Assembly: GCF_040938485.1 (NCBI RefSeq)
Contig: NW_027270903.1
Location: 2,914,001 to 2,978,000 of the forward strand
DNA: 64,000 bases
Source of the DNA: Diadema antillarum
Taxonomy: Eukaryota
Direction: 5' to 3'
How positions within the stretch are numbered: position 1 is the stretch's first letter; every line of letters starts with the position of its first letter. Position numbers and translations under genes: made by a program. Below the pieces are notes generated by a model. The model made no database searches and was not told the origin of the DNA. It saw nothing but the letters and a program-made list of their open reading frames with translations. Below are positions 33,101 through 35,822 of the stretch, piece after piece.

Positions 33101-35822
33101 AAGGAAAAACAATTTCAGGGGGCTTGGCAGCACTAAATAACATACCGACAGTCCTTCGCAGAGCCTGCACTTCTTGCTGCAGCCTCAGGATGATTTCATC
33201 AGCCAGCTGTGCCCGCTGTTCAAGGCGCTGGATCACTGCACTGGATGCTGCCATTACACGAGGAGTCGCCAACAATCTAGCTACAAACCTGCATGAAAAT
33301 CACCAGTTTGGGGACGGGGTGGGGGTAGGGAGTAAAAATTAGGGCCAAACATTTATGAAATGGAAATCACATCAGCTCCATTATGAGATACCTGTATTCT
33401 TAAAACATTCATCATTTTGCAACTTGTTAGTGATCACTTCAATAATAGACAATGCCGAGTACAGGGGGCAGATTGGAGTTGTTGGATTGGCACACTGCAT
33501 GCACGGGAGGTCTAAGCACCTAGCAGAAGGTAGAACCATGGGCAGTGTGAATATCAAACTGGAAGAAGAAGGCACTGGCTGAGGCCATGAGGAAGTGAAC
33601 AGCATGCACCAAGATACAGTGTACATCTATGTACAGTTGTAATGTCTGAAGTGCCTGACTATGGGAAAACAAACTAGCATAGCAGTGGCTTAGCAGACTT
33701 AAATTACAGTAAGCCAACCAGTATTTGTCCACCTGCCAGAATCCTTCCACTGATAACAAGCCAGCAAATCCTCAATTGTCACAACACAGGCATATCACAT
33801 TTCTCACCTGGCATCGTCATTCGCAACAGGACGCTCCCTTAATCACCTATCCACCAAAACTCCCAAATTTCACCATCGAAAATGCGAAATCAGGCCCAAT
33901 TTTTAAAAGCGTTCGGGAGTGCTGTCTAGTGTTAGATATCAGGGTCACCAAAAAAGCACTAAAAATTGAGAAATGTGCCATTCTGTTGCAAGACTTTTTG
34001 CATATCGCAAGCTCAGAGTATGATGGTATCCGCAAAAATGCAAAAAAAACCCCCACCAAAATCTCCGTACATGCTGGTGCAAGTTTTATGCAGAGGGGTT
34101 GAATGCAAGTGCCATCTTGTCAGAATTCGTCCACCAACAGGCGCCGCAATGTCCCCGATGCAACCTTGCGCCAACAAGGTATGCCGCAGCGCATTTTTCA
34201 GCTGCCCTGAACACACATAGCGCCCGGCCAATATGCTGGTCGGGGCGTGGATGGATTCTAGTCGGTTATCATCCCATAGGCCCATAGCCACAGCAACATA
34301 TCTTTGGATTTTCTGAAATTCCATGATGTATCAAATAAAACCAATTTGCAATGAAAAAAGTTTATATTAGATCTCAATTTAACATTCGTTGATAGATATG
34401 ATTTATGAATGATTTTGTATATCATTTTAGTTGAAAAATATTGCAGAAAAGTTTTTGTGGCCAAATTCTGCACTCTCGTCATTATACAGTGGTTTATACT
34501 CTAGATGAACTTACTTGTTGTATCTTGAAAAGTATGCATGAACTGAAATCAAATTTATACTATAAGTAGAACAAGGCTGTGAAAGATAATTAAACTTTAA
34601 AGTGTCTTTGAATTCGGTGGCCGTGTGGGATAAAGTGCCTTGCCATAATTTAAAGGACACCACCACTACTACTGAGAGGCACGTAGCGTACTGCACTGCC
34701 ACTGCCACTGGACTAAAGGTCTCGTTTGGACCTGAACCAATAAATTTTTGATTGAGTGACTTGACAAAATGGTTTCATATGTTCTCTATCAAGACTGGAA
34801 TACAATACTTCCATGTCAGATGTGATGTGATGTGATGTGAAAATAATGCTCTATCTATAGACAATGCAATCCAGTTCGGGAAACCCACTCACAAGGGGGG
34901 CCCCTCCTTATAAGTAACCCGTCCCCCCTATAAGTAACCCCGTCCCCCTTATAAGTAACCCCCAGGGCACCCCTTATAAGGAGTCTCCACGCTTTTTTGC
35001 AATGCAACGCGAAAATGAAAGGACTGCGGCAATTCGCTTGATTATGTCCATAAAGCTTCACAAGTTTCCTAGTTACTCACGAAATTTGAGCAAAATCGGT
35101 TTGAGGCATCATATCTAAAATCATGGATTTAAATGCGATGTCAAACGACCCATGCGAATGCTGAAATGCGAGCGATTACTGGCGTGAGTGTCGCCAGGCG
35201 CGGCGGCGCGGCAATGCTTGAGTGCAGACGTGGCGACTGGATTACTGGCGTGAGTGTCGCCAGGCGCGGCGGCGCGGCAATGCTTGAGTGCAGACGTGGC
35301 GACTGAGTACGTACTCAGTCGCCACGTCTGCACTCAAGCATTGCCGCGCCGCCGCGCCTGGCGACACTCACGCCAGTAATCGCTCGCATTTCAGCTTTCG
35401 CATGGGTCGTTTGACATCGCATTTAAATCCATGATTTTAGATATGATGCCTCAAACCGATTTTGCTCAAATTTCGTGAGTAACTAGGAAACTTGTGAAGC
35501 TTTATGGACATAATCAAGCGAATTGCCGCAGTCCTTTCATTTTCGCGTTGCATTGCAAAAAAGCGTGGAGACTCCTTATAAGGGGTGCCCCGGGGGTTAC
35601 TTCTATTATAAGGGGGACGGGGTTACTTATATAGGGGGACGGGTTACTTATAAGGAGGGGCCCCCCTTGTGAGTGGGTTTCCCGAACTGAATCCATATTG
35701 ACATATTGTATACAACCAGGACCTCCTTGCCTGCCTGACACCTTTGCTATCCCACAGACCCCAGACTTGCCCAGTAAACAGATGGCACAGCCAAAATGTA
35801 AGAGTCTAAAAAACACTTACAT
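27190..35822 (-). CDS. AIMP1: AIMP1/p43 (pro-EMAP II). Short form 310 aa from ATG 33254; long form 322 aa from a split ATG 35822-35821/33288. Exons (35822-35821), 33288-33146, 32034-31933, 31449-31282, 30600-30386, 28535-28367, 27359-27190
   Basis: N-terminal coiled coil [62 protein letters not shown], Pro/Lys-rich linker, tRNA-binding OB fold [85 protein letters not shown]. All GT-AG; 933 nt from the short-form ATG. Confidence 0.95.
27628..27783. repeat. Short interspersed element with degenerate (CCCTAA)n telomere-like core
   Basis: AGGGCAATTAC ... GTAATTGCCCT ends around CCCTAACCCTAACCC tracts; a related reverse fragment lies at ~36316-36400. Confidence 0.65.
29249..30227 (+). mobile_element. 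HINE/DINE-1/pearl(Tsp)-like non-autonomous element with ~5 tandem 158-bp cores
   Basis: Starts AACAAG; subterminal IR TGTCCCCGCCG (29286-29296) / CGGCGGGGACA (30213-30223); cores start at ~29300, 29458, 29616, 29774, 29933; (GACG/CACG)n tract ~30105-30178; 3' stem-loop. Confidence 0.8.
32120..32357 (-). mobile_element. TACTGTATAC MITE, family D
   Basis: TACTGTATACACCGAATATTTCACGAGG ... TATATGGCGTAAACAGTA; reverse complement of 42164-42407. Confidence 0.75.
33830..34215. repeat. Diverged interspersed repeat shared with ~52010-52370
   Basis: Shared blocks ATCGCAAGCT..TGATGGTATCC..AAAAATGCAAAA..GGGTTGAATGCAAGTGCC..ATTTTTCAGCTGCC in the same orientation. Confidence 0.6.
34872..35689. mobile_element. 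818-bp spacerless foldback (palindromic) element in AIMP1 intron 1
   Basis: Centre GACTGAGTAC|GTACTCAGTC at 35310/35311; arms near-identical; termini CAGTTCGGGAAACCCACTCA; AATC on both flanks; 66-bp tandem duplication in the left arm. Confidence 0.9.

Follow-up and report, generated by a model that had tools for sequence, protein, structure and literature searches.

Results

The 64-kb window analyzed here, a stretch of 64,000 nucleotides (nt) of Diadema DNA, contains a gene that is identified by its domain content and its similarity to annotated proteins as AIMP1/p43, the precursor of EMAP II. Within its family, AIMP1/p43 is characterized as a scaffold subunit of the multisynthetase complex that binds ArgRS and GlnRS, a role that is predicted for the product of this gene as well. 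All AIMP1 coordinates given below refer to the minus strand of the window. The gene model consists of seven exons that together form a frame of 322 codons, with GT-AG borders on exons 2-7. Exon 1, of which the 3′ part was modeled (35821-35970), belongs to the 5′ untranslated region (UTR) and ends in the first two letters of a start codon. It is followed by intron 1 (33289-35820; 2532 nt; phase 2; GTAAGT...CAG), which interrupts this codon after AT. Exon 2 (33146-33288) carries the G of the codon, a short leader, a second in-frame ATG and the start of the N-terminal helix. A coiled-coil region is encoded in exon 3 (31933-32034; splice model and alignment) and a low-complexity linker of Pro, Ala and Lys in exon 4 (31282-31449; splice model). 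The tRNA_bind/EMAP II-like domain is divided between exon 5 (30386-30600), which matches positions 1-44 of PF01588 with an E-value of 2.7e-13, and exon 6 (28367-28535), which matches positions 46-96 with an E-value of 6.6e-13, the borders of both exons being taken from the splice model. Exon 7 (27190-27359; splice model) encodes the C-terminal part and ends with the stop codon TAA at 27192-27190.

Relatives of the protein were gathered by an exhaustive protein search with exon 5, and the full-length matches were aligned with the exons of the window. The best matches are AIMP1-like proteins of Diadema, with 96-98% identity, followed by AIMP1-like proteins of other echinoderms; with the D. setosum orthologue as query, the identity is 69% for Strongylocentrotus and 65% for Lytechinus. 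The N-terminal helical region contains the motif RLEQRA..AD..I..L, in which, across the N-terminal alignment, L22, A29, D30, I33, L36 and L43 are invariant. The assignment to AIMP1 made in the original prediction is thus borne out by the PF01588 matches of exons 5 and 6 and by the identity to the Diadema proteins.

The start of the reading frame is assembled by splicing. The 3′ end of exon 1 reads ...GAGAAAAAGTCAC AT, with the A at 35822 and the T at 35821, and is followed immediately by the donor GTAAGT of intron 1 at 35820-35815. The intron closes at 33289 with the acceptor ...TCATGCAG (also read as ...TTTCATGCAG), and the first letter of exon 2 is a G at 33288, in the sequence G TTT GTA GCT AGA TTG TTG GCG ACT CCT CGT GTA ATG GCA GCA. 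Joining of AT and G gives an ATG, referred to here as AUG1, which is followed by 11 leader codons (33287-33255), so that the leader comprises 12 residues including the initiator Met. The canonical start codon, AUG2, lies at 33254-33252, in frame and 12 codons 3′ of AUG1. In exon 1, an in-frame TAG is found 11 codons 5′ of the AT, and therefore translation in this frame cannot start earlier than at the spliced ATG. Between AUG1 and AUG2, the spliced model contains neither a stop codon nor an ATG in any of the frames, and the 148 nt 5′ of the AT are likewise devoid of ATG. The coordinates and letters with which the original prediction described a start codon split by intron 1, adding a 12-residue leader, are therefore correct, and at the level of the sequence the split AT|G and the leader are confirmed as genuine parts of the gene model.

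The same arrangement was found in the annotated genes of this genus. The 322-residue model differs at 5 residues from the D. antillarum proteins XP_071489018 and XP_071490346, and at 13 residues from the D. setosum protein XP_072170774. In both species the coding sequence (CDS) annotated in RefSeq starts exactly at the AT of a homologous AT|GTAAGT, the counterpart of the 3′ end of exon 1 in the window, and exon 2 begins G TTT GTA GCT AGA. Thus, in the genes of the AIMP1-like proteins XP_071489018 and XP_072170774, the exon structure, the split AT|G and the 12-residue leader are all as in the window; intron 1, which is 2532 nt long in the window, measures 2990 nt in D. antillarum and 2159 nt in D. 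setosum. Both annotated Diadema isoforms, of 322 and 306 residues, retain the leader.

We compared the conservation of the leader with that of the DNA around it. The stretch that begins with the G of AUG1 and covers the leader is identical to D. setosum at 36/36 nt. Exon 2 as a whole is identical to that of D. setosum at 142/143 positions, and the part outside the leader at 106/107. Over the last 200 nt of intron 1, the identity to D. setosum is 85%; the first 200 nt are more diverged, with 83% identity to D. antillarum and 72% to D. setosum. The exon 1 stretch is 97% and 90% identical to D. antillarum and D. setosum, respectively, and the non-coding flanks, the first 200 nt of intron 1 apart, are 94-98% and 85-96% identical. 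By these values and by its protein, the window is closest to D. antillarum. By our own arithmetic, the probability of observing no change in 36 nt at the rate seen in the intron is about 0.003. Given also the shared annotated start and the phase-2 intron found elsewhere (see below), the conservation of the leader and of the split codon exceeds, in these alignments, what is expected by chance.

The D. antillarum assembly GCA_040938485.1 contains two AIMP1 loci, on contigs JBFRCO010000015.1 and JBFRCO010000147.1, which encode an identical 322-residue protein. In our comparisons the flanks of the two copies also match identically. The two copies are probably retained haplotigs or the product of a recent duplication.

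To place the leader in a wider context, we collected AIMP1 proteins from all deuterostome groups by a profile search and by a search with the D. setosum protein. Many of the resulting models carry a short extension ahead of the canonical Met. Among echinoderms, this extension reads MFVARSLIRSGI in Strongylocentrotus, MFVARSLVRSGI in Lytechinus, MFLVRGFQCTRLT in Asterias, MFLLRTTTKRLR in Anneissia and MLRSGCRLI in Apostichopus. It is MIVARSLLR in Ptychodera and MLALRPLWR in Saccoglossus; among vertebrates, it is MFVLRPFVK in Lampetra, MFLVKQLIR in sharks, MFLARSLIK in teleosts, MFLARSLVK in turtles and MIFCRFLAK in mammals. Leaders of nine residues follow the consensus M-[FI]-[FLV]-[VCA]-R-[SF]-L-x-[KR], counted on 50 distinct sequences out of 72 such leaders; in a more general form this is M-[FI]-x-x-R-x-L-x-[KR], which the Diadema leader follows through position 8. 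At least 90% of the aligned sequences share the Arg at position 5, and at least 70% share M1 and F2. This alignment and consensus support the homology, noted in the original prediction, of the Diadema leader to the mammalian extension MIFCR[FL]L[AV]K, and hence the view that the two are orthologous. Conservation of the leader across deuterostomes, which had been suggested on the basis of the human sequence, indeed extends from echinoderms to mammals, and includes the position of the intron.

For the latter, the proteins were mapped one by one to the genomic loci that encode them. In Diadema (three genomes), Asterias, Anneissia, Apostichopus, Ptychodera, Saccoglossus, Lampetra, Terrapene and Sorex, exon 1 contributes exactly two coding bases, AT, followed by GT, and exon 2 begins with the G that completes AUG1 after a phase-2 intron. 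Beyond Diadema, the start codon is thus split in a sea star, a crinoid, a sea cucumber, two hemichordates, a lamprey, a turtle and a shrew. Amphioxus has an intron of the same phase in the same place; its exon 1 encodes 12 more residues, and the annotated start is displaced farther upstream. The mammalian locus used was that of the shrew Sorex araneus, and by analogy with the shrew, the turtle and the lamprey, the start codon of human AIMP1 would be split as well.

A leader of this kind may also exist outside the deuterostomes. Five transcript-derived AIMP1-like proteins (P0033, P0335, P0121, P0098 and P0108), which are about 42-46% identical to the Diadema protein (a comparison covering all but P0335), have a basic, hydrophobic extension before the canonical Met, e.g., MKLATVR-, MFRVLFRQSRCTK- and MNIICAKLFRRTLT-. 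P0033 and P0335 are of unplaced origin and possibly lophotrochozoan; a search with P0033 returned no close named relative. The annotated AIMP1 models of Lingula and Ridgeia start at the canonical Met and have no leader, which reflects either its absence or a missed split codon. The sequences of the five proteins therefore suggest that the leader may be older than the deuterostomes.

To gain insights into how the two start codons might be used, we examined their contexts. In Diadema, the context of AUG1 is agtcacATGt, i.e., C at -3 and U at +4, and that of AUG2 is cgtgtaATGg, with G at both positions. The same asymmetry recurs across nine independent lineages. AUG1 has a pyrimidine at -3 in 8/9 and a G at +4 in 0/9, while AUG2 has a purine at -3 in 9/9 and a G at +4 in 7/9. 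Because the context of AUG1 is weak and that of AUG2 is strong, leaky scanning is a fitting explanation, and its proposal in the original prediction agrees with the asymmetry seen in 8/9 lineages.

The leader also changes the character of the N-terminus. It shifts the first acidic residue from position 12 to position 24, and lengthens the acid-free, positively charged N-terminal segment from 11 to 23 residues; the first 22 residues of the long form include three Arg and no acidic residue. The description of the leader as basic and free of acidic residues was thus accurate.

From these data we derive the following model, which we consider probable. The first AUG of the mRNA would form when exon 1 (...CAC AT) is joined to exon 2 (G TTT GTA ...). 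Owing to its weak context, a minority of the scanning ribosomes would initiate there, producing a 322-residue form whose 12-residue N-terminal presequence would direct it to mitochondria. Most ribosomes would pass on to AUG2, and produce the 310-residue form, i.e., the cytosolic scaffold of the multisynthetase complex. Initiation at AUG1 in the sea urchin, the proportions in which the two forms are made and the mitochondrial import are what we infer.

Several observations weigh against this model. A 5′ UTR longer than about 150 nt would place the ATGs at 35973, 35995, 36021 and 36056 ahead of AUG1. The Diadema leader fits the nine-residue consensus through position 8 and then diverges, with three extra residues. 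The long and the short forms were not told apart by a simple hydrophobic-moment metric, to which we give no weight. RefSeq isoforms that start at AUG2 are found in many species (e.g., Antedon X2, Acanthaster X2 and Terrapene X2), so that the choice of form may depend in part on alternative 5′ exons. Lastly, searches of sequencing runs with exon 1 and exon 2 gave no run on record as RNA, although one run, X1, with a word share of 0.12, was guessed to be RNA; the four runs examined (X2, X4, X6 and X8) consist of DNA contigs that cross the exon-intron borders, and include zero joints between 35821 and 33288.

The isoform data raise the question of whether the choice between the long and the short form is made mainly at the RNA level, with alternative first exons or donors supplying or omitting the AT, that is, by a splicing switch rather than by leaky scanning. 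Paired RefSeq isoforms with and without the leader exist in Dendropsophus (X1/X2), Terrapene (X1/X2) and Chrysemys (X1-X3), as well as between Anneissia (X1) and Antedon (X2), and because AUG1 arises only by splicing, any other 5′ exon would abolish it. In amphioxus, moreover, the intron at this position lies behind a longer coding exon 1. However, a pure splicing switch has no need of the asymmetry in context that leaky scanning predicts, and both annotated Diadema isoforms include the leader. The human case, too, is described in a passage of a review as a single mRNA with two in-frame AUGs (PMC4394549). Because the asymmetry is conserved, we rate a choice made solely in the RNA below leaky scanning and regard it as unlikely; part of the choice may nonetheless be made there, which is compatible with the leaky-scanning model.

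The outcome of the run searches for this genome, together with the fact that the RefSeq models are predictions, bears on another explanation, namely that AUG1 is not used to make protein, the leader frame being an artifact of gene prediction or the upstream start serving only to regulate translation. Transcript data from relatives argue otherwise. Logan contigs of 1.3-2.3 kb contain complete, leader-initiated open reading frames (ORFs) of 316-319 residues (P0268 and P0277), resembling ophiuroid and holothurian AIMP1. Since the shortest genomic span of an AIMP1 CDS that we observed is 3.4 kb, these contigs must derive from spliced mRNA, and so the leader ORF is carried by spliced transcripts of echinoderm relatives. 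In addition, the amino-acid pattern of the leader is conserved across phyla, the exact AT|GT junction recurs in 11 taxa, and the leader DNA is unchanged between the Diadema species, whereas the adjoining intron has diverged by 15%. We therefore regard an unused AUG1 as very improbable.

A further question is whether the leader, if translated, acts as a mitochondrial presequence. It might instead alter the stability of the N-terminus, its association with membranes, or the way in which the N-terminal helix pairs with arginyl-tRNA synthetase. Twelve residues are few for a presequence, and the amphipathicity of the leader, as captured by the above metric, is not distinctive. Its first five residues are strongly conserved, and targeting peptides are usually less conserved than this. 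In addition, the mitochondrial function of p43 is given as not known in a review (PMC4394549). On the other hand, the homologous human extension of nine residues is described as a mitochondrial targeting sequence in a passage of that review, and the Diadema long form has the charge distribution outlined above. Another role for the leader thus appears distinctly less probable than a splicing switch, and mitochondrial targeting remains our preferred interpretation.

The window also includes a number of repeats and neighboring features. Within AIMP1 intron 1, an 818-bp, near-perfect foldback palindrome occupies 34872-35689. It belongs to a very high-copy family, with a summed contig depth of thousands to tens of thousands, compared with about 5-40 on the flanks. 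Contigs of X4 (34858 to 35715, with 15 other letters in between) and X8 (34873 to 35716, with 14 letters) skip the palindrome, which thus looks polymorphic. A second very high-copy repeat, at 32047-32487 in intron 2, just upstream of exon 3, has a summed depth of about 7,000-60,000 in all four DNA runs, and many internal joints and loose ends in the contigs. Intron 5 carries, at 29364-29964 on the minus strand, a unit in four tandem copies, spaced by about 159 bp, whose translation repeats almost exactly. On the promoter side, 450-700 bp upstream of AUG1, about 45 G in a row and a simple tract rich in T are found at 36470-36515 and 36220-36270. The minus strand also carries, downstream of AIMP1, an open frame at 13723-13962 that resembles the initial coding exon of a nucleoside diphosphate kinase (NME) gene.

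Discussion

The human precedent that the original prediction named for this gene, an upstream in-frame AUG with a mitochondrial leader, matches the literature. According to a passage in a review (PMC4394549, citing Shalak, Kaminska and Mirande 2009, Biochemistry 48:9959), one human mRNA, translated from two in-frame AUGs, yields p43 proteins of two lengths, and the nine extra residues of the longer form are a mitochondrial targeting sequence. Human and Diadema AIMP1 belong to the same gene family, and in both an upstream in-frame AUG precedes the canonical start, by 9-12 codons. The leaders are homologous (MFVAR-LLA in Diadema and MIFCR-FLA/V in mammals), the context of AUG1 is weaker than that of AUG2 in both systems, and intron 1 splits the AUG1 of a mammal, Sorex, just as it does in Diadema. 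The two systems also differ. The Diadema leader has 12 residues rather than nine, and its second half, TPRV, is without a vertebrate counterpart. Dual initiation and targeting have been reported for human p43, and are predicted here for the Diadema protein. A comparison can also be drawn with human KARS1, where, as we propose for AIMP1, one nuclear gene of the translation apparatus serves both mitochondria and cytoplasm through different N-termini; KARS1, however, relies on alternative splicing of exon 2, and not on two AUGs in a single mRNA (PMC4394549).

What we describe is thus not a new mechanism, but the echinoderm orthologue of a mechanism described in humans, and one that is already contained in RefSeq models. 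In the searchable literature, which did not include the primary paper of Shalak 2009, we found no mention that the start codon of AIMP1 is split or that this split is conserved, and none that the leader is shared by Ambulacraria and vertebrates. That the split codon is so deeply conserved is a modest added point.

For genome annotation, the gene illustrates cleanly how a start codon can come into being through splicing alone. The original prediction held that ORF finders miss it. This is true of six-frame or single-exon ORF logic, which is blind to such a codon, but not of eukaryotic gene predictors, which model splicing and cope with it; the RefSeq models do start at this codon.

A broader proposal, which we put forward tentatively and consider possible rather than probable, is that the AT|G has been split since before the divergence of echinoderms, hemichordates and vertebrates. 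This would imply an ancient mitochondrial function of p43, and an AUG1 built by splicing that is used as a switch through the choice of 5′ exon. If so, that choice would decide whether the mitochondrial form of AIMP1 can be made at all.

The leader, the weak context of AUG1 and the intron that splits it have been kept from sea urchin to mammals. This conservation suggests that the mitochondrial form would be under long-term selection, and no mammalian curiosity. Sea-urchin embryos would then offer a tractable system in which to approach the function of the mitochondrial form of p43.

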